A stretch of DNA of 64,000 bases from Klebsormidium nitens (Eukaryota; Plantae; Klebsormidiophyceae), in contig DF237345.1 of the NCBI GenBank assembly GCA_000708835.1, forward strand, positions 22,221 to 86,220, in the 5' to 3' direction. Made by a program: the position numbers and the translations under genes. Under the pieces are notes generated by a model. That model was not told the DNA's origin, searched no databases, and saw only the letters and a program-made list of their open reading frames with translations. Positions 1,092 through 29,120 of the stretch are shown in pieces (within the stretch, counting starts at the first letter, position 1; the number at the start of each line of letters is the position of its first letter).

Positions 1092-4000
1092 TCACCCTAG
1101 CATTACTTCTAGCGCAGCCTCTTCGTCATCCTCGCCCGCAGACTCATAGTCGCTACCATCCTCCTCCTCCTCATCTAGCGTTCCCTCTCCCTCTGCTTTC
1201 CCATCATGAACTAACGCCTCGGGCGCTCCCTCTGCGCCAGTATCCCCACCCTCCTCTAGTTCGTCGCTTGACTGCCACTCGAAATATTTAAGCGGCTGCT
1301 GGGGCCACTCGAGGAAGAAGTTGTTGTTCACCATGAAGCGGAAGCTCTGGAGGAGGTGGCTCTTGTCCTTCCGAATCTGGGCTCACAAAAAGGACGTGTG
1401 TCAAACGACTGCTTAGACCTCCTGCTCTTGGTTCAAGCGCAGTTTGCGGAGGGATTGATCACATATAAATATCTCGTTCTAATGGCAAGCAGAAACCTGG
1501 CCCCAATTCACCTCTTACATGTTGTGCCATGAAGATGCTTCTGGATTGTTTCCAACTCAACAACTGCGTGATCTGACTAAATGGGATTTGGTGCATCAAC
1601 GGGGCGGACAGTCGCTCCGCAGACAAATCTGTCCTTGCTCAAGCGCATTGGTATTCTGATTTTATGGGCCGAGCGCTGTGCAAGTGACAAATGCTCTGCA
1701 AATATGATGATGTGAAAGACTTTTCGAACTAGGGTACGAAACTTCGTGCCGACTGAGAGGGTTAAAGTATCAACGAGAAAAGCAGCAAAGAAAAAAGGAA
1801 GGAGATACGTCTTGAATGCTTGACTCACCTCCGGCGCCAAGAGTTTCTCGAGCAGAGTCGGTGCTCGTTTTGCCACTTGATTCTGTCGTCGCCGGTCGTT
1901 TCCGGGTCCTCCGGGTCCCTGTCAAAAGCGGATCGGATTAGGACAGGGCGGAAAGTACTGCACAACAGAGTCAAGCTGCAGCCAGCGGGGCCCAAAACCA
2001 TGAGTAGCCGCGTTTGTTGGATATTCAGACTGGCCTACGAAAGGAAAAGTCGCTGCATCGATTGAGGGTTGACGGGAGATGAAGACATAATTGCTGAGCA
2101 GTTTACCGCCAAAACTCCGCTTCCGATCATTCATAAACGTATCATAAACCCGGCATGATAGAAGAGACGTCAACAAAGACGTCCAGAATAACGTCCGAAC
2201 CGCAGCTCGACACTGCCGATAATACATCCGGATTAAGCAAAGGAAGACTGGGCAAACCCTTCACGTCCGACGCGCAGCTCTGCACCCCATCCTCATCTGA
2301 CCAGAAGTCTGAACCCAGCCATACTCTTCTCATCCAAAGGGCCAATCACCAACAATTCATCGCTCAACTCACCCGCTCTCCCCGGGGCGTCCTCTGATGC
2401 AAAAACTGGCACCGCCGCCCCTTCCTACAGTGCCCCTTCAGGAAAAAGAAGCACACCCCGCGCTCGGGGCGCCCCCCCGGGCCCTCCACCGCCTGCCGCT
2501 TCCCCCCGTCGAGCATCGCCGCGGCCTCGGTTTCCGACCCCTCCCCCCGGGGCGTTTCCGGGGGGCCGAATCGCGCAGCATGTGCGGGGGGATCTCCGCG
2601 ACCACGACCCCCAGAGCGCGCTGCTGTTGGAGGATCTCGCGCAGCCGCGCGCGCCGCGCGGCGCCGTCTAGGTCCTCCAGCTCGCCGCGGGCGCGCCGGG
2701 CCGCCGCCTCCTCTGCCTAGACAAAGGGGTTGAAGTTTAAGGGACTTGGCATATGGAGATTCAAGGATTTTTAGTGTAGGGTGTAGGACTTCCTAGTGGT
2801 GTCTCTGAGTGTGGCGAATTGCTACCAGTCAAAAGGTTCGAGAATCGAGACATGTTTCAGTGAGAATGGAACAAGCCCCGGGCAGCCGTTTGCTCTGCCT
2901 AGACAAAGGGTTTGACGTTTCACAAACTCTTGGAGAATAAAGATTTGAGTAGCTTTCAGCATAGTGTCAGGACCTTTTACTGGTGTCTTCAAGGTGTGGC
3001 GAGTTGCCACCAGACGGAAATGAGTGATTTCACCATAGTGTCAGGACCTTTACTGCTGTCTTCACATGTGACGAATGGCCGCCAGACAAAAGATTCCGCT
3101 TGACACATGCTTCGGTGGCTCTAGGCCGGGGAGATACGGAACGAGTCTCCAGGCAAGGTGGGCCGCTGCTGCTCCTGAGCTGACAACGGTCCGAGAGTCG
3201 AGAAGTGCTCCACAGCACAAGCGTCAGGCTTTTAGACCTAAACAACACATCACGTTGCAGTACCAGTAGGTAATCTATTCAGCAACCTCAGAAGGAGACC
3301 CAATCTGCACTCGCTGGGGCACGGATAACCTTGTATTTGCATAAACTTCAAGCTGCCCTGTTCTCCACTCTCTTTTGGGAAATTGGAGGACTGACAAAGA
3401 CAAACAAACACTGGTCAGCGTGCGCAAAGCCCCACCTTTTTCTGGACGTTGCCCTCCGTCGGGTAGTGCTTCCGTCGCTCCTCGCGCCACTTCCTAACGT
3501 CCTCCTCGGTCTCGTTGGCGTTTGCGGTGGCCGCGGCGCGCGCGCGCCCCAGCTTGTTGCCGGCCTGGTGCGCGCTCAGCTTGTGCTCTTTCAGGACCTT
3601 CCCTGGCGGGAAAAGAATAAGAAAGTCAGCCATTGCCGATCAGAAATTCCTAGTCTGTCTTAAGGGGAGGAACAAGGACGAATTGTTGCCTCTTTCTTGG
3701 TGGACGTATGGGCGATTAGCTTGTGCTTTTTCAAGACTTTTCCTGGCAAGCCACCAAAACACAAAGTCTCAGCCACTGTTGCACAGTCGAAGACCCCAAG
3801 TTTCTGCGGATTGTAGGACTTGAAAACTTTCAGTTGTAGGAATCAAGTTGTAGGGAAACGAGGAGTACGGCTTCACTGCGATTGGACAGCTTGAGCTTTT
3901 CCACGACCCTTCTCGGCAAGAAGCTAAAATACAAAGGCTCTGCAATTGTCGAACAGTGGAAGCTTTCAACTTTCTGTCGAATCATGGAAATGGAAAAAAA

Positions 4001-16653: not shown

Positions 16654-19600
16654 TCATGTCCTTGTTTGCTCGAAACCGTCAGCAAGGTCCCGTGACCCCT
16701 CTACCGGCCGTTGGTTGTCCGGCGACAACTCGAGGCCGCCCGGTTCCAGCGCCCGGCCGTCCAACTTATTCCCCCAACTCGTAAGTGGCGTTACGTTGAT
16801 GCCAAAGAATCCTACTGTTACAAGAGCGCCTCCAACAAGAAGCAGAACGCTCGGGCTGTTCCTGTTGATGAATATATCGGCGACGATCGCGATCGGCGTC
16901 TGAAAGGCGAGGCCGACGGTGGCGGCGGTCGGGGTTGTGAGGACCACTGCTCGGGCCCAGAGGTAGTCACTGAGGACGTTGTCGAGCAGACCTATGCGTC
17001 AAGGAAATACTCATGTGGTTTAGGTAAGAAAATTGATAGGTAGGATAGTAGTAGTTCTCCAGGAGAAATCAATCCTAAAACCTAGACTGACAAATGGTCT
17101 CCAGCCTAACCCCCAGACTAACCCCTCCCGTTCCCCGGGCCATGACCATATCCCACCTAAGACTATCTTACCTTAAACCATAGACCAACGCGTCAAGGAA
17201 CACCATATCGTTCTGGAAGGCCTACGCGTTTCATGGGTCTGTGATGCGCGTTTCATCGTTTTGTGAGACGAGCGTCGCTTCTGCACGCTCCCGCGCATAA
17301 GGGAACCAGCACTCTGGCTGGCCCCACCCTGAGCGGAAGCACCGGTAACTCAAGAGTTCTAAAAATCATCTGCGAAACCTCCTTACCCTCGATCGCCTGA
17401 GTGCGCAGGGCAAGACATAGGGGACGAGCAGGGGGATGCAAAGAAAAAGGAATGGAAGAGCATATGGTGTGGCGAAATTTGTAAGAATTTGGATGCTGCC
17501 GCGACCTTGGTAATTGTTGAGAGCACCACACCGCCATTGTGATTGCCGCCGAAACTTCTGATACCGAACCGTATCGAGGAGGATCAGAACGCCCGGTAGA
17601 GCAAGTACCCAAACCAATGACACAACCTCAGATTTGTGTATCGGTACACAACTTCGGCGAATCTCGTTCCGATCAACTGACAAATTTTGCCGCTTTTCTC
17701 TGCACTTTTCACAGCCCTTCTACTTAAGCTTCTTCATACGAGAAGAGTCTCCGACGGGGGCTCGACTCTCAAAATATGCCATCGAGACTCTACAGCGAGG
17801 GACTCACCTTTCGCGATAATTAGCCCGAACTGCCTCCCCCCCATCTTGCGCACCCGCTCCACCCCGGTGACGTGCAACCCCAGCAGGATCGGCCACAGCA
17901 GGAGCGCGCCGAACAGCCCCACAAACCCAAAAACCAGAGCGGTGGAAACTTTCTGTTCCGGAACCGCCTCCCCCTCCTCCTCTTCACTCCGTTCGTCCGG
18001 CAGTTCTTTCCTCAACATGGTGGTGTAAGTTGCGTATAACAGCGCGGAAAGGAGAACCAGCGCGTCTCCAAGGATTGGGTTAGGGGCGCGGTTACGGGAT
18101 TGGGGGTCCGGGGCAGAGTCTGCGACGCTGACTAAGGCGGTACCCCCCATGACGCAGCCGATCATGGCGAGCTTGAAGAAGGTGAAGGGTTCCTTGAGCC
18201 AGACGACCGAGATGATGAAGGTGAAGAGAGAGGAGCAGCTGCTGAGGATCGTGTTGGACTGCAGGACGAGGGAGGAGGGCGAAACATTGGCAGTCAATCA
18301 TATACGAACACTCGAAATGGACGAGAAACGGGTCGACAGAGGAAGAAGCAGGTGACCAGGATTAGTTTAAGGCTACAGGAAGGGAGGGGGCGGGGACAGA
18401 TCTTATAGCGAGGCTTACAAGCGCAATGCACCGAGGGGGACACCCTTTAATCAAGTGGACGATTGCACGGCTTGGATGGCCTTGTGCTAACAAGGAAGAA
18501 ACTTAGTGACAGGCAGCAATGGAATTCAGGGGAAGGGCTGACGACGATACACATTCAAAGAGCTCAAGCCAACTTCTTAGCAGCCTTGCTCACCGTGACT
18601 GTCGTTAAAATGAGCGACAGGTTGAACGTGTACTGCCCCATGAACCAAAGCGGCGCAATCACCAGCCCGATGCGCGCCGCCCGCTTGTGCTCCTCGCAAT
18701 ACCCCCCTCCCTGCTGGTGCTGCATGCCCGGATGCCACAGATGCTCGCTCATGTCCACCTCGGAATACCCCCCCAGATCCTCCTCCGAAAACACGTCGCT
18801 GGCGAGCCGGTGGGGGCTCGGCAGAGGCATTCGATGACCCTCGGGACCCCCCCCATCTGACGTATCAATCCAGAGGCCCTGTTCGGGGGTGCTCGGAAGC
18901 GCCGGGGGCCTGTGAGCGTGGCTCAGGCTGTGGCGTCGGTCCTCGACAGGGCCTTCTGGAGGGGAAAAGTCGACCGCCCGAAAACCGGAAGCGCCCGGGG
19001 AACGGGGGCTTGCGCGTCCCCCTGGAAGAGAAACTGCGGAGACGAGGTGGTGGTGCAAAGGGCGCAGGTCGGGGGACATGCCCTGTCTCTTGGGGGACGC
19101 TCCGTGCTTTGGGGGGGAGGCTCCAGTCGGAGGCAGATCAGGTGATTGCGCCACCCCGCGTGTCGTAATCCTTGGCAGATTCTGATGTCCTGAAGAATGG
19201 GAACTGTGACCCTCCGAAAGGGGCGCACCGTGCCCCCCCCCCGGCATCGCTGCATTATGGACACCCCCATTTTGAAGGCTGTCATTGTCTGCTGGCTCGA
19301 GATCTGGTTCGGACCTCCCCGGGCTTGCCAAGCCAATCACTGTGTACGAGACGGGCAGGCTCTTCCGCCGCCACAGCTCAAAGTGCCAGTTGGGTTTCTT
19401 CTGCCCCCCCACCTCGCGCTGCGGGGAGGTCGGGAGCTGCAGGGCTCTCCGAGCGAGGCGCCTTTTGAGGAAGGATTGGCAGCCGCGTGTGGCTTCCGTC
19501 AGGGGGATGTACAGGATAAAGAGTGAATTGCAAATGTAGGTCAAGAGGAACGGCGTGGTCCCGGCCGCTTCGACGGCTTGGACAACGAAGCTGGCGACCA

Positions 19601-19676
19601 CCCAGATGAGCGCGACGGCCGTGACAAAAGACATACCGAGGGCCCACCGGCCCTGGGGCCCTAGAGACGAACCCAT
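16654..19676 (-). CDS. EamA/drug-metabolite transporter family protein (SLC35F5/THI74-like)
   Basis: Exons 19676-18594, 18258-17808, 16991-16654 join in phase. Hydrophobic segments LIWVVASFVVQ, PFLLTYICNSLFILYIP, APLWFMGQYTFNLSL, SNTILSSCSSLFTF, GDALVLLSALLYATYT and GLLDNVLSDYLWARAVVLTTP are typical of this family. Confidence 0.9.
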
Positions 19677-20534: not shown

Positions 20535-23500
20535 ATGTCTGCGGAGGCCCTCCTCACCGGGGTGGGCGAGGTTTCTGATGAGGCGCCACTGCTGTTCTCA
20601 TCACGCCGGTCGCCTGTCCTGAGCCAGAATGGCATCGTCTCCTCATCCCAGCCCCTCGCGACTGCTGCCGGGCTCAGAATTCTGCAGAAGGTGAGAGTGG
20701 TTGACGTTAACGTACACCTCGAGTGACTTCTTCTCTGTATAGTACATGATTAATTTGCCCCTTCCTTACTGTGCGAGCTCAGAGGGAGCTTCGGAGCACG
20801 GGATAAAGTACGCAGTGCATCAATCAAAGCTCAACACTCAACGGTGTCACAGATTGTTGATGAATCACAATTTGCCCTCATAGAAATAGACACAGAGAGT
20901 TATGACGTCTCTTGCTTGGTGATGAAGCTATGATGAAGTTGCTCATACTGCACAATGGAAGATCAATTTGGATGGTCACTTCCTTCTAAATAGTCCCTTC
21001 CTTTTGATATAGCTGTTGTGCTGTAGTACCACCCCAGTCAGAAGGAGGTATGCTGGGAAAAGTGCATGTAGGCTCCATACCTCACTGTTGTGCTTTCGTC
21101 CAAGTCAACGGTCTCCCCAATTGAGCACTGGTCTGCACACTTACAGCACTTGATTCAACCTGCAAGCACCTCTCTTTTGACTATCTGTTGGCCCTGTTGT
21201 GTTTGTAGGGAGGGAATGCTGCGGATGCCGCAGTCGCGGTGGCTGCCTGCCTGAATGTTACTGAGCCCTGCTCCACTGGTAAGCCTGATCAGAATTTTGA
21301 GACAGCCTTGGTCTAGCTTGCCTGAGCCTTTTCACATATCTACTATGCATCGCATGCCTCCTCATCTGCAATGCTCCTTTCAAGCAGTGCCTCTTCTCAA
21401 TTTGGAATAAAACGGACACTTCTCATCAACTGCAAGTGCAAAGATCAGAAGTTGGCGACACGAGGAGGATCATAACAGACTCTTTGTTGGGTATTCTTTA
21501 CATCTTGTTTGAGTACAAGGGGATATTCTCCTCCACGTCATCATCACCCTTCAATGTGGAGTTCTAATTTCTTGAGAAGTTCACAGTGTCGATCTCAGCT
21601 CTTCTGCATCAATGGCCCCAATTGCAACTTGTCCCTTCTCATCCTGCAGGCATTGGGGGAGACGCCTTTGCGCTCTTCTACGATGCAGCCAAGAGGACCG
21701 TAAGCTGCGTCCAGGGAAATGGCCGTAGCCCCTCTGGCCTCACCCAGGACCTGATACAAGAGCGGGGAATCAGAGACGCCCTCCCAGTCTATAGCGGATT
21801 GACCGTCACTGTGAGTGTGTTTGTCTCGCCTGAAGGCGACCGATCCAGGTGCTGTAGCTGGTCAGTATGTCTCATTTTTTTTTTAACGGATTAATGTGAA
21901 ACATACCGACCAGGTCGCACTGCTCATCGGCCCCCTAACCTCGAGAGAGACAGTTGATCAGAGAAGAGTGAAATCCGTATCCAGCTTACTCAGAAAGCGC
22001 AATTCCCAAGCTCCTCGTTTGGATTGATTGACAGGGGTTTGGCTCAATCTGCTCAACGTCTGAAGGCCATCGCCGCTTGGTTGAATCTGTGTTGTGGAAC
22101 GGGTTCGCCTCCATATTCCACAGCTTCATCTCAACTTGTAAAGCCCTAAACTGCTCCATCTGTTCTAGCTCACAATCCAAGCTTGGGTCCAGAAAGCCTC
22201 CCAGCCCCTTCTCAGACGACAAGCGAAGGACCAATCTCAATTCAGATCCCTGGTGCTGCCGCCGCCTGGGCTGACATCATCGAGCGGTTCGGCACGCTCC
22301 CGCTGTCCGAAGTCCTCGCCCCCGCCATCGAGCTCGCTGAAAAGGGCTACCCAGTGTCTCCTATCACCGCCTCCCATTGGGCCCGAGGCGTGGATCAGCT
22401 GCAGCAGGGGGGTCCGCACGCAGGGGACATGCTGATTGACGGGCGAGCCCCCCGCGCAGGAGAGATCATCAAGATGCCCAAGCTCGGAAAGTGAGGGGCA
22501 ACGTCTGGTGCAGAGCCGTTCTGTGTTTTTTTGTTGAGGTGGGGGAGTTCTGAAAGTTGGGCGCGAGAAGGCAGAGCTTGAAGAGTGAGGGAGGGAACCT
22601 CGAACTTCGCGGCTCACACCACGTGGTGCAGTCTCAGCAGTCTTCGGGGTCACTGCCACTTGTGGGTTTTCTTATAATCTTGTTCTTTGTTTATTTGGGT
22701 ACCCATGCAAGTTTAATCCGTGATCGTATCCAAACGTTTCTATTCTAAACAAGATACTTGAGCACTCATGGAGATTTTGATTTTTGACTATCAAAAATAG
22801 GCAATCTTTCCTTCTAAGCTCGTGAGCCCCGTCGTTTGCTGCAGCACTTTTCGACTGTTGGCCGAGCACGGCAAGAAGGGTTTCTACGAGGGGGCTGTTG
22901 CGGAGGCAATCGTCAAGGCCGTAAACTCGAAAGGCGGAGTCTCTACGCTCCAGGATCTCAAGGAGCACACAACTGCATTCCCCGAGCCGATCCACACCAC
23001 CTATAAGTGAGACTTCCTTCCAGTCCTTGTGCAGGTGCGAATTGTTGCGTTCATTCTTCGTGTCAGAAGAAAGATGAAGAAGGGGACAGTTTTTGCTTTT
23101 CGTTTGCTGGTTATCATACACAAACGGAGACCCGTCGATCCTCTGACGGGATTCGTTTCCCAACATCTATATTTAAAGACGAACGGCTGTACGCGTTTCG
23201 TGTATGAACGCTACTTTATCTATACGGCCTGGACACCGTAACGCCTCGGAACAAATCCTTTCTAACCAGAATTCTTCGAACTGCGGAGGCGCACAGCATC
23301 GCAAGGCGACTTGGGAGTGCTTCTTTCAGTCTCACATGTGCGGGCTGTTTTGCAGGGGCGTTCAGGTTTGGGAAGTCCCCCCTCCGACGCACGGGCTAGC
23401 GGCTCTGATAGCGCTGAACATTCTGGAAGGTAAGCGCTCTCTTTCTGGGCTCAGGCTACTCCATAGACAATGTTCTGACTAAGCGCTGAATGTCGACTCC

Positions 23501-26500
23501 ATTCTTCGTCGTTTCGTGCCTCTGGCTATGGTAAGTTTCATAATCGAGGGTCGAACCGGGCGGTCGAGAATGGTGCTAAAATTTTGTCGGAGACTGCTAG
23601 CGGCCTTGTCGACTGCTTGCGGCCTTCTGGAGCGCATGGGCGCCCAGAATGCCGGCCGCATTTTCGGTCACACGCTGTACAGTAGACTCTTCTCCGTCCC
23701 AAGCGTTTCCAGCTCTTTGGCGATCAAACAAGGGCTTATGCAGGTCAGCAGGGGGCTCATGTCCCACAGGGGCCCGTGGCATCCCCCCCAGATCGGTTCG
23801 TCTGCAAGTGCACGACGTGCTTTCAGAGGTACACGTTTCCGGACTCGAGCAAGGGCAAGTATGTGCGCTGCCAAAAGTGCCGGGGGGCATTCATGCCAAT
23901 GGAGGAGACGCCCAATGGCGGCGCGCCAGGGCCGCGCACAGCAGGTGAGAGCGGTCAATCGAACGTCGATCACCCTCCACTTCTCAAAAAGGGAAATTTT
24001 GACTCTGTTAGGAGTGGGGCGGTCCAGTATCAGAACTTCGGGATTTACCTTATGAGAGTCAAGTGCCAATCGACTTTTGTTGGAGGTTTGGAGTAAGGGC
24101 TGCTAAACTTGCTTGAAAAGTGCGGGCCTCATGAATTAAGGTGTATTTGGTAGTGGTGCGCTGCATTTTTAGTCCCTCGGTAAGCGCGTTCGACTCAGGG
24201 GCTCTCTTCACGGGTTCAGAGCCTCATGCTTCTTGGAGTTCGTCGTTAAAAGCGTGTCGCTTGTAGACAGGGCCTTTGGGCAAAATCCGCTTTACGTTCT
24301 TGTCGATCATGGCACTGGTACATTCTGGTATTGTGAATCGTGGTACCGATTCTTTTGATATGTTGGCACCCAAAGCCCGACCTTACGCGGATTTTGGTCA
24401 AGGAACAAATTGCAAGTGCCCTCTCCAACTTCGACAATCCAAGAGCTGTCCCCCAATCCGCTGTTCTTGACGCTCACAAGTTCTATACCCGTAAGCTGTC
24501 CCCCGCATTGCATCTTGATATTGAGAGTGCTTCCCCGCAACCCCTGTCGGTACAGCCGCGCCCCGAGCTGCTCCCCCGTCTTTTCCTGCAGCACCTGCGC
24601 CCGCTCCCGCTCCGACCCAGCCTCCAGTCGTCCGGCCGGCGCCGCCTCAGCCTCAGCCTCAGGGTCAGGCTCAAGCTCACGCTCATAGGGTGTTCGCACT
24701 GTAGTTTCTGAAATTGAAGAAAGTGACCACCCGAGCCTGATCGGGCTCGGTTTTGACCGGTACCGTTCGCAATGGATACCGTTGCGGCCGAGCACCGTCG
24801 CCTCGATCATGGTCTTCGGGCCCGAGAGAATTGAGCCCAAGCCTGATCGGTTTGGATGTCGACTCGATTCAAAATCGATCAGGCTTGGGCTCGAGATGTC
24901 CGAACCGAGCCCGATCGGGCTCGGTTTTGACCGAAAATTGCCAAGTGCGAATACCCCATCAGCCCCAGGCTCAGCATGCTTAAGACCAGAAAGTTATTAC
25001 CAGAGTTCAGGGCCAGCTGCCACACTGACGGTTTCTCGACCCCCAGCCTTTCTGGTTGACGCCGGCCCTACAGCCATCCCGCCGAAACTTGTTCCTTGTA
25101 GGTCTGGAATACTTTCAGAGGTCCAATATGTGTCGCCCTTTCCCGCCTGTGCAGCCCAGGGCGGCGGCACATTGTTGGGCGACCATTCGTCGGTGCAGCA
25201 CTACCACGTGTTGATCGAGGCCATGCGGCTCGCGTTCGCGGACTCGCTCGCATACATCGCCGACCCGCTCGTTGTGCACTGCCCCATCCAAGAACTGCTT
25301 TCAAAGGTGGATCACTCGACTCGCGCTAAGACTTTCGGTTAAGATTGACTAGGTTCTCCCTGGGGGTGTTGGAAAGAGGGTAATCTTGCACACGAAGCTT
25401 ACGCTATCCAGCTTCCCGGCAGTTCTACAGCTTCTCCCCAAGCAACCTGCCAGTTTTAGTGTCGACTAATGTAGACTGTTTTCAGTCGGCAGCAGACTGA
25501 ATAGCTTAGACTAATATTCTCAGTAAAACTGGCTGGATGGTCGGGAGAAGCTGTAAATTGGGAGGCGCGTGCGAGTCAGCTCCCTGCCGTCTCAAGCTAA
25601 GACCCTTGTCGCAACAATGAGAAAAGGGAGTGTTTTGAAAAAAAAGGGAAGGCACAGAAGATGTTGAGCAACACAAGCTTAGTCGTCTCTTTTGGCGGTC
25701 TCTTTTGCTCACCAATTTTCCCCTCTTTCGCCCTAATCCTCAACGATCAGTCAATCTTCCATAAACATGGGACCTTCCATCTGGCTCTCTTAGAGAATGC
25801 ACCACCATTGAATCCTTTCACCTCAGCGTAGGATGCGTTTTTCCTTTTTCGATGTTTCGGAAGCAGCTCATACTGCCTGGTAAACTTGTTTCAAAAGCCA
25901 AGATCGTTGAGACATCAAGTGCGCGGAACTTTTGATTGTCTTGTGTTGACATCGTAGATAACAGCGTTCGAAGTTTGAAGCCGCCGTCTGAGCGGATAGA
26001 GGCGAGAAGCTATGTGACACTGACAGTTCCATATTCTCAGCAGGTGTATGTTTCTTTACCGTCATTATGCCTCGATCAACAAGGTAGGTCTCGATCAACT
26101 GCCGTTCCGTTCAACCAAGTTCTCCGTGTCTCGCAGGAGCACGGAAAGGAGCGCGCGGCCCTCATCGACCTTGAAAAAGCGATCCACGTCACGCCCAGCA
26201 TCCAGGGCGGAGGCTCGGACACCGTTTACTTTTGCGTTGTCGACGGGAAGGGGAACGCCTGCAGTATGATTAACAGGTGAGAATCGGCACACCTCCTTTT
26301 GAGGTCCGCCAGCATCCTCTCGTATCTCCCAGCAAACTCACCTTGGATAAGACAAGGGATCTGTGCACACTAGCCCGAGTTTCTGAGTCACCTTGAGAAG
26401 CAATGACACTTCAAAAATAGATAGCTTTAGGAATAGTAAGATCACCAGCCTGGGACGGGTAGGGTTAGTTTGGGGTTTAGGGTGGGTCCGGGTGCGGAGC

Positions 26501-29120
26501 AGGTACTTTATAGGTCAGGCTTCTACTTTTTTCGATTCGAGCTTAGAATTCCTGAAGCTTATTAGTCCTAAAGTGTCAAGACGTCTGGTCGGGGCCTTCC
26601 CGGCCTTCTCAAGGTCTGTCAGCGACCAAGTGGGACTTCGGTGTAGCGGAGACCCCGGTTACCTTTTCGGATACCGATCAAAAAGGAGCTTACAGACGGA
26701 GCTTCTGGTCTGTGCTGCAGTAACTTCATGGGTTTCGGGACGGGCATCATTCCGGAAGGCTGCGGCTTCTCGTTACAAGTGAGCCAGCACATGTTGCTAT
26801 CCCTTCCACTCAAGCCCGCAGTACGTCTTTGTGCCGCATGGCCGCGGATGGCCCTGGATCGCCCACCCCGCAATCAATCTGACGCCTGTAGACTTTTGTA
26901 CCGTCGTCACCTCAGACTCAACAGGTCAGAAAAGCAAGAAAGCATTCCACAGAACAGAGGTCGATGTCTGTTTGCATCCGGCGAAATGTTATGCTCGAGC
27001 ACAACCCTAAGGCTCCAACCTTGCAAAGCTGTTTTCTCCCCATCATCCCAACCTCCAAGGTTCTTCAAATGGTACCGAGGCCGAGGTTACCGCTTGAATT
27101 TAGACCTTTATGGACCTGAACCTGCGCCCGAGCAAATGTATGTCAATAGTTCAAAACTAACTTGTTTGCTCCTAAGAGCCGCGGATATGGTTTCAGTATT
27201 TAACGGCAATCCAACGGTACTCCAACGGTACCTCATCGCATCAGCTCTTGTGAGCGGCCGATTCTGAAGCTACTGATAGATCGACTTGAGAATCCTGGAA
27301 CATAAACGTGAGCATCTACAAGCCCGATGGCCCCTTGATCGTCTTCTTCAGGTTGCAGCTCCAAATCCAACCCTTGCCTAGCGCAACCCTAACCCCACAG
27401 CGTCCCACGACCTATACCACACGAAGTACTTACCCCGCAGTCTCAGAAAGAAAGCTTAAAACCCTCTTCAACTTGAAAGCCAGCCCTTTTCTTTTCACAA
27501 ACGCGGCCACGGCTCTCGCGCATCGGCTCTTTGACCCGCATCTCGATCACATACCGAGCGTCAAAACACATCAAGTGAATGCTGAGTAAGCCGAAAAGCG
27601 ACTCTTACGCAACGTTTCCCGTCTCAGAATCGCGGATACGGCTTCAGCCTCGACCCCGCGCACCCCAACTGCATCGGCCCGCGCAAGCGGCCGTACCACA
27701 CGATTATTCCGGGGCTCGCGACCTACGCCCCGGAAGACGGGGACGAGTCACACGCGGGCGACCTGTTCGGACCGTTCGGCGTGATGGGCGGCTTCATGCA
27801 GCCGCAGGGGCACCTGCAGGTGATTGTGAACCTGCTGGACCACGGGATGGATCCCCAGGTGAGCTTCCGTGCTGGTTTCCGCCCGTTCCGTTCTTCGTTC
27901 CGGCCTTTTCTCTTGAGGCTTGCAGCGGAAGCTGGCAGCCCCAGGGGCACTTGCAGGTGGTCGCGAACCTGCTGGACCACGGGATGGATCCCCAGGTGAG
28001 CGAGTCGCCCGCGATTTCAATTCCGTGCTTGTCTCCCTCCATTCAGCATTGAACACGCCTTGCAAAGAGAGTGGTTCGTAGAAAGGGCTCCAGCTTTCGC
28101 CCACTTGACACGTTCCGGTCAGAATTCCAATTATGGCGGAGCAAACCGGCGAACCCCGGTCCAATAGGCCTGGATTCAGAGGAGCGACCACTCCGTGCTG
28201 CCGCAGGCTGCGCTGGACGCCCCACGCTTCTGCATCTCGGGCCTCCCCGGCGTGCGCCACTCGGCGGAGCTCATCGCCAACAGCCAGTGCTACCTCGAGG
28301 ACCAGCCCGGCGCGCACGAGAAGGCCGCCAAGCTGCGGGCGATGGGCCACGAGGTCAGCCGCTGAGGTCATCCTGCTCAGAGATGACGTCACCCGATTGA
28401 TTCCGTCCGGCCTCTGTGACGTCGTCCAATATCATTGCTGAGGTTCAGCTAAAAGAGGTCCGCTATAGGCACTGAGAGCGGCGCCATTGCTTTTGAATTG
28501 GAATTGTCGCTTCTTTCTCATATCGCCCCTGCTTTCTGCTTTCAGATCAAGGTCCTGAGCAGCCACGATCGGGCGAGCTTTGGACGAGGCCAGGTAAGGG
28601 CGCTGGCCCGTGATTTGCCTTGCCGGAAACCGAGAACAAAAAGGATAACTAGCATGGACAGCTTACAGAAGAAATACAGGGAGAAAGGGCGAGGGTGCGA
28701 CGCTCTGCATGCAGCTTTCTCCCAACCCACTTATTTGGCGGCGGTGCTGATTGATTATGGAGTGGAAAAGGATTTCCAGGTGTCAGAAAACCACTTTTCT
28801 GAATGGTCCGCTAGCGTGACCGGCTTATCGCAAGGTTAGGGCTTCTCCTTGCAAGCCTTCTGGCAGGCGGTAAAGAGCTTCTTGGACGGGGGAGGGGCTC
28901 AACGAACTTCGAGGAGAGAATCCTTTTAAATCATTCAAAAGGCACATGCGCTGCTCGTCAGGGGTTGCATTGGCTACACTGACCGTGTGGAGGTGATCAG
29001 ATGTAAGAAACGGATCTCAGACATTGCATCTCCTCGCAGATTATTGTCCGAGACCGGAAAACGGGGGTTCTTTGGGCGGGTTCGGATCCACGAGCGGACG
29101 GGTGTGCCATGGGTTGGTGA
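20535..29120 (+). CDS. GGT: Gamma-glutamyltranspeptidase / glutathione hydrolase proenzyme (YwrD-like Ntn-hydrolase), 13 exons
   Basis: Spliced motifs in order: [113 protein letters not shown] (autocatalytic Thr), [45 protein letters not shown]. First exon 20535-20690; last exon 29040-29120. Confidence 0.95.
23528..24704 (+). CDS. Candidate nested gene: small CxxC-x17-CxxC zinc-ribbon protein with a Pro/Gln-rich tail (~97 aa), inside GGT intron 23430-25154
   Basis: ATG|gtaagt at 23528-23530, cacag|GGG at 23770, exon to 23944 |gtgaga, ttttcctgcag| at 24592 and TAG at 24702-24704 join in phase. Product: [96 protein letters not shown]. Confidence 0.65.
24731..24933. repeat. Palindrome/hairpin element in GGT intron
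   Basis: A 29-bp direct repeat at 24731-24759 and 24905-24933 contains the palindrome ccgagcccgatcgggctcgg (perfect in the second copy). Between the copies is a perfect 17-bp inverted repeat (24833-24849 / 24876-24892). Confidence 0.85.

Follow-up and report, generated by a model that had tools for sequence, protein, structure and literature searches.

A 1725-nt intron of a GGT-type enzyme gene in the alga Klebsormidium nitens holds a zinc-ribbon exon on the same strand. The intron occupies positions 23430-25154 of a 64,000-nt stretch of contig DF237345.1 (assembly GCA_000708835.1, positions 22,221 to 86,220 of the forward strand). This whole stretch is called the window, and its numbering is used throughout unless another contig is named. 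Comparison with homologues from other genomes shows that the segment at about 23770-23944 is a genuine coding exon under purifying selection. With moderate confidence we read the intron as the host of an independent small nested gene, in some exon configuration. Such a gene, made of three exons, had been proposed in an earlier examination of the window (the sequence-only reading). Its central exon proves to be real, constrained and non-ancestral to GGT, while the exact set of exons is not established.

Conservation of the zinc-ribbon exon

The 66 residues encoded by 23746-23943 were used as the query of a HMMER scan of 1.84 billion cluster representatives, which returned 38 matches. In this entire set only two matches are close, P0001 (65% identity, E 9.1e-14) and P0005 (55% identity, E 1.3e-7), both of them prokaryote-style open reading frame (ORF) calls on eukaryote-looking contigs. 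No closer paralogue of the window exon was present in the protein library scanned. At the nucleotide level, the window was compared with the two genomes that carry these ORFs, one represented by an ENA metagenome contig (L001) and the other by two overlapping contigs (L002 and L003) from Logan assemblies of two SRA runs. Whether the whole window or the intron was submitted to tblastx, only the ribbon exon aligned between the window, L001 and L002/L003. The ribbon frame scored 80 bits, compared to 52 and 49 bits for the other forward frames and 58 bits for the best reverse frame.

Substitutions in the exon are constrained. Pairwise ratios of nonsynonymous to synonymous divergence (dN/dS) range from 0.24 to 0.37 (about 0.3), with dN values of 0.2-0.5 and dS values of 0.85-1.4, the latter being near or at saturation. 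A three-taxon distance split assigned to the window branch a dN of 0.054 and a dS of 0.39, i.e. a ratio of about 0.14. The window thus has the shortest dN branch of the three; it was shorter than that of L001 in 93% of bootstrap replicates and shorter than that of L003 in 99.9%. The three genomes agree at nineteen residues of the exon, the four cysteines among them. Finally, the GC content at third codon positions (GC3) of the ribbon exon is 0.78-0.82, compared to 0.74 for the GGT exons, and the overall GC content of the surrounding introns is 0.48-0.51.

Taken together, the homologues, the constrained substitution and the GC3 are at odds with a chance ORF and with a pseudogene that died long ago. 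CxxC pairs do arise by accident, and two other CxxC-x12..22-CxxC strings are present in the six frames of the window. However, significant homologues, selection, coding-type GC3 and a confident fold prediction (see below) led us to reject a chance ORF, whose probability we regard as negligible.

Position of the exon relative to GGT

The GGT exons on either side of the host intron join in phase 1, and when aligned with 2nlz, a solved GGT-like chain, they are contiguous. No extra exon is thus needed for GGT to be complete across 23430-25154, and the claim that it splices correctly when the nested exons are left out is borne out. The five neighbouring introns measure 435, 354, 349, 830 and 444 nt, so that the host intron is 2-5 times longer, and the whole three-exon model (23528-24704) falls inside it.

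The surroundings of the exon were then compared with those of its relatives. In L001, the 1.1 kb before and the 7.8 kb after the ribbon exon contain no GGT exon, and an aldo-keto reductase is encoded on the other strand. In the second genome, no GGT exon was found within 4.1 kb upstream (L002) or about 1.5 kb downstream (L003). There, an LST8-like WD40 gene shares the strand of the ribbon exon; its 3′ exons occupy L002 1411-2640 (equivalent to L003 up to about 990), and its stop codon is about 1.45 kb before the ribbon exon. LST8 is not in the window, and the neighbourhood of the ribbon exon differs in all three genomes. Pfam searches of the relatives' flanking ORFs gave nothing useful. Conserved homology and synteny had been suggested as a check on the nested gene. 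The exon has homologues in L001 and L002/L003, but there is no synteny and the remainder of these sequences does not align.

As the ribbon exon lies away from GGT in the relatives, the unit appears to be independent of GGT, and its conserved function cannot depend on GGT. Judged from these contigs, the ribbon unit is a stand-alone gene in at least one relative, and this location outside GGT favours a nested gene over a GGT exon in the window. The reading of the exon as ancestral to GGT was rejected.

In the window itself, the ribbon exon could nevertheless serve as an alternative GGT exon (cassette or alternative terminal exon), alone or beside a nested gene. Two versions were considered. In the first, a 201-nt cassette (23744-23944, + strand) would add 67 residues, a zinc ribbon, to a loop at the surface of the large subunit. 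In the second, the cassette would be joined to 24592-24704, giving a truncated GGT N-terminal fragment ending in the ribbon and the tail. The GGT exon 23356-23429 ends in phase 1, and the acceptor TATGCAG/GT at 23743/23744, whose TGCAG core is the local norm, keeps the ribbon frame in phase. The donor at 23944 is strong and also in phase 1, and the 201 nt provide 67 codons without a stop, placed between …LNILE and the following helix. The 201-nt version would thus preserve the GGT frame, as frame-preserving cassette exons that add a domain do. However, a phase match alone would occur by chance in roughly 1 in 3 cases, and the acceptor at 23743/23744 has the poorest pyrimidine tract of all candidates (0.37, purine-rich). 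Moreover, unlike such cassettes, the exon is found outside GGT in its relatives, away from any GGT exon, and GGT is contiguous and complete without it. A search among proteins of 315-1003 aa turned up none with the exon, although its candidate selection may have missed one. A weak similarity to L001 (described below) would place the start of the exon upstream of 23744, and would have to be due to chance under the cassette reading. We consider the use of the exon by GGT to be distinctly unlikely.

Exon structure of the proposed nested unit

With regard to the nested gene, direct reading of the sequence confirmed the ATG, donors, acceptors, exons and tail frame of the three-exon model where they had been placed (Table 1). 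The ATG, said to lie about 100 nt past the GGT donor, was measured at 98 nt. Two details had to be corrected. The exons add up to 3+175+113 = 291 nt, or 97 codons including the stop, so that the predicted product has 96 residues and not 97, and the spacer between the knuckles is of 16 residues (CTTC-x16-CQKC) instead of 17.

Table 1. Coordinates of the proposed nested unit and of the flanking GGT exons in the window.
Feature	Position	Strand	Remarks
Candidate start ATG with consensus donor GTAAGT	23528-23530 (ATG); 23531-23536 (donor)	+	First exon would be the ATG alone
Zinc-ribbon coding exon	23770-23944	+	Acceptor CCCACAG/G at 23769/23770; conserved core 23773-23940
CxxC-x16-CxxC knuckle pair (CTTC ... 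CQKC)	23809-23880	+	Four Cys invariant in three genomes
Donor GTGAGA, phase 1	23945-23950	+	Sits where cross-species conservation ends
Candidate tail exon (uncertain)	24592-24704	+	Acceptor TTTTCCTGCAG/C at 24591/24592; completes the split codon; stop TAG 24702-24704
GGT exon upstream of the host intron	23356-23429	+	Ends …LNILE, phase 1; donor GTAAGC; aligns with 2nlz residues 261-283
GGT exon downstream of the host intron	25155-25306	+	Aligns with 2nlz residues 293-330

The proposed splice signals suit such a unit. The string ATGGTRAGT occurs once on the + strand of the window, at 23528; about 0.002 occurrences would be expected in the 340 nt upstream of the exon, an estimate made post hoc. 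The donor hexamer GTGAGA at 23945 is identical to the GGT donors at 23007 and 26277, and the tail acceptor CCTGCAG at 24591 is strong and of the local TGCAG type. The tail exon is a Pro/Ala/Gln stretch, open to its stop codon.

The 5′ end of the ribbon exon admits several solutions. Six phase-0 acceptors (23686, 23704, 23713, 23749, 23752 and 23770) join ATG 23528 to the ribbon frame, and the best pyrimidine tract among the candidates is that of 23713. Two other 5′ ends are 23733, which fits only ATG 23490, and 23744, which is in phase 1 and fits GGT. Upstream of the ribbon, a weak in-frame similarity between the window and L001 (score of 37 compared to a shuffle mean of 26.7 ± 4.8, p 0.035) hints that the exon may start near 23704-23713 rather than at 23770.

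In both relatives, the exon is followed by sequences that could belong to the same gene. In the L002/L003 genome, the ribbon exon has its own in-frame ATG 35 codons before the DRF motif, and L003 carries a phase-1 donor, GTAAGG, at the place matching 23945. About 390 nt past this donor, L003 has a strong acceptor and an Ala/Pro-rich exon open in phase 1; its phases also fit a coiled-coil exon at 3973. A similar Pro/Ala/Gln-rich exon, open in phase 1, is present in L001. A consistent multi-exon model across the three genomes was not obtained. L001 is devoid of a canonical phase-1 donor after the exon. The name of the L001 record carries '2x', which may mean low coverage, and sequence errors are possible.

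Downstream of the ribbon exon of L001, an 81-codon ORF (…RCYTIQYKPHESRKKNGEVDREKLTPAQAVAAVAMYDKAV…) is found at 2070-2315. It gave no Pfam match and has no counterpart in the window or in L003. This ORF may be a C-terminal exon of the relative's gene or a separate gene.

Several observations weigh against a nested gene, or against its three-exon form. The first coding exon would consist of the ATG alone. Two other ATG codons, one at 23470 (opening a two-codon ORF) and one at 23490, lie upstream of the proposed start, so that translation from ATG 23528 would need a leader of at most 35 nt or leaky scanning. ATG 23490 likewise yields an in-frame model if it uses the donor at 23531 together with the weak acceptor at 23733. 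The structure of the start is not shared by the relatives: in L003 an ATG lies inside the exon, and in L001 a stretch of 198 codons is free of any in-frame ATG. The GC3 of the tail exon is 0.58, unlike coding sequence, and a hexamer microsatellite, (GCCTCA)x5, lies inside it at 24644-24673. All three forward frames are open over 24594-24688, and the microsatellite keeps them open along its length. By tblastx against L001-L003, no significant similarity was detected between the tail exon and the relatives' downstream exons. The relatives' genes may have further C-terminal exons, in which case the window copy could be truncated.

Searches for proteins that contain the exon point in the same direction. 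A word-indexed search with the exon peptide among candidates of 36-115 aa found none, and a second search with residues 195-260 of P0001 among candidates of 149-474 aa recovered P0001 alone. A third search, aimed at proteins of 315-1003 aa such as a GGT with the cassette, started from an alignment whose first sequence was a 573-aa bacterial protein with several ribbons, and yielded bacterial relatives of that protein only; this result is weak, as only the 8000 candidates sharing most words were scored. When JGI metagenome contigs were scanned with the three-genome alignment, none of the 113 pattern matches was confirmed. Even if a nested gene is granted, the exact three-exon model is therefore perhaps best described as doubtful.

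These difficulties raise the question of a stranded copy, i.e. a fragment of a ribbon gene, once complete or complete elsewhere, that was moved into the GGT intron by rearrangement or by transposon-mediated capture and is no longer expressed as a protein. Synteny with either relative is absent, further coding exons seem to follow the ribbon exon in the relatives (such as the coiled-coil exon of L003), and a palindrome resembling a transposable element lies just downstream in the window (see below). The start and the tail are dubious, and the exon is in no database protein within the searched lengths. However, a sequence released from selection is hard to reconcile with the shortest nonsynonymous branch of the three, and the copy retains all 19 invariant residues as well as its open frame. 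Its GC3 is that of coding sequence, strong splice signals are located exactly at the exon edges, and no closer paralogue was found in the protein library. We therefore hold a stranded copy to be unlikely, and retain a nested gene of some exon configuration as the preferred reading.

Identity of the zinc ribbon

The ribbon has two CxxC knuckles separated by 16 residues, as in the layout of MJ0042-type ribbons (a spacer of about 15-20 residues in a unit of about 36 residues). Direct comparison with the hidden Markov models (HMMs) of this group argues against a plain assignment. The score was 19.2 bits for TIGR02098 (MJ0042_CXXC; cutoff 20.9), 16.7 bits for PF13717 (Zn_ribbon_4; cutoff 30.3, E 0.007) and 10.5 bits for PF13719 (Zn_ribbon_5; cutoff 29.3). 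The relative P0005 likewise scored 17.2 bits for PF13717 (cutoff 30.3).

Further comparisons support the assignment. The other 36 of the 38 HMMER matches look mostly bacterial, and many have several such ribbons. Three of them, the whole proteins P0007, P0010 and P0011, score above the Pfam cutoff of Zn_ribbon_4 or Zn_ribbon_5 (Zn_ribbon_4 in the case of P0010), and the phmmer E-values of the exon to P0010, P0011 and P0007 range from 1.7e-7 to 7e-6. Alignment of the three-genome profile with P0010 by hhalign gave a probability of 96.3% and an E-value of 1.8e-9. A model of the ribbon was calculated by AlphaFold2 from the three-sequence alignment, with a predicted local distance difference test (pLDDT) score of about 90 over residues 11-40. 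When this model was compared with the PDB by Foldseek, the ZitP zinc finger 2nb9 ranked first (probability 0.96, TM score 0.52-0.58, root-mean-square deviation 2.2 Å over 40 columns), with an E-value of 0.23, significance being inherently low for so small a domain. Among solved chains, the GltJ/AgmX zinc ribbon 7zok is the closest in sequence (E 0.15). Searches of the ESM Atlas gave values of 0.87-0.90 to planctomycete, verrucomicrobial and zinc-ribbon clusters, which are leads only.

The resemblance to MJ0042 put forward by the sequence-only reading is supported by profile and fold comparison, and not by the direct HMM scores, which are under the cutoffs. The exon is filed here, on alignment and modelling, as an apparent divergent relative of the MJ0042 / Zn_ribbon_4-5 group and not as a threshold-passing member. 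It shares with MJ0042-type ribbons a length of about 35-40 residues, the two CxxC knuckles and the pattern RF.C..C...Y ... K..VRC.KC...F. Unlike the bacterial ribbons, it is eukaryotic (streptophyte), intron-split and in single copy, and there is apparently no transmembrane or other domain behind it.

The characterised bacterial ribbons dock proteins. The zinc ribbon of ZitP in Caulobacter binds PopZ (PMC5182065), and that of GltJ in Myxococcus binds its own linker and recruits MglB (PMC11135422). Because of these precedents, our best guess by analogy is that the algal ribbon is a small protein-protein docking module and not a DNA binder. However, the partners of ZitP and GltJ (PopZ, MglA and MglB) are bacterial, so the binding target in the alga must differ.

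Model for a probable nested unit and its host

The one clearly conserved part of the unit would be an exon of about 58 codons carrying one MJ0042 / ZitP-type ribbon; behind it would come a Pro/Ala-rich, disordered tail. Transcription would start within the GGT unit, and a very short leader would lead to ATG 23528 and the donor at 23531. The transcript would then be spliced to a phase-0 acceptor between 23704 and 23770, and from 23944 to 24592, and would end ahead of the GGT exon at 25155. The ribbon would act as a docking module, by analogy with the bacterial domains. Transcription and 3′-end formation inside the intron would compete with full-length transcription of GGT.

Mammals have many host/nested gene pairs; the nested partner tends to sit in a long intron, and either orientation is frequent (PMC11694760). 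The statement that same-strand nesting is rare is therefore overstated, the two mammalian orientations being 'broadly similar' in frequency (PMC11694760). The polyadenylation of a host gene can be shifted when its nested gene is expressed (PMC11694760). As in such pairs, the algal unit is wholly contained in one long host intron. It differs from them in its very small size and in the position of its putative start codon, only 98 nt past the host donor.

A dual role may also be envisaged, in which the ribbon exon would be the core of an independent protein and, in addition, part of a switch acting via the acceptor 23744 or via intronic polyadenylation after 24704. Such a switch would put a docking ribbon into GGT or shorten GGT transcripts, so that the amount or the form of this glutathione-degrading enzyme would be set directly by expression of the nested unit. 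We give this combination a slim chance.

Other features of the locus

A palindromic element resembling a miniature inverted-repeat transposable element (MITE) occupies 24731-24924 of the host intron. Its 27-nt inverted ends are 89% complementary and frame a central 24-nt hairpin (24833-24892). The element begins 27 nt past the proposed stop codon and adds to the length of the intron. No second copy was found within the window. An Rfam search of 23000-25600 gave only microRNA-precursor matches to the palindrome hairpin, far below threshold.

Further downstream in GGT, a 67-nt exon piece (…QPQGHLQV) is present in two tandem copies, at 27798-27864 and 27935-28001, which are 137 nt apart and 93% identical. 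Both copies end in an identical GTGAGC donor; the exon may have been duplicated, or the two copies may be mutually exclusive exons.

Just upstream of GGT, the - strand contains a 370-codon ORF (18564-19676) with a hydrophobic N- and C-terminus and a long Pro/Ser-rich middle part. It may be one exon of a membrane transporter gene. Pfam searches of the opposite-strand and other-frame ORFs of the window gave nothing useful.

Significance of the probable nested unit

Neither small zinc-ribbon proteins nor nested genes are new, and the present results do not overturn current ideas. If it is expressed, the unit would be a protein-coding gene that is apparently lacking from the annotation of the alga, as judged from the searches among proteins of 36-115 aa, 149-474 aa and, less certainly, 315-1003 aa. 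Expression would also mean that a ZitP/GltJ-like ribbon, studied only in bacterial proteins of polarity and motility, occurs in a small lineage-restricted family of streptophyte algae. Finally, the locus would provide a compact example of a host and a nested gene on one strand, in a land-plant relative that diverged early and in which the placement of the promoter and the competition between the two genes would be measurable.

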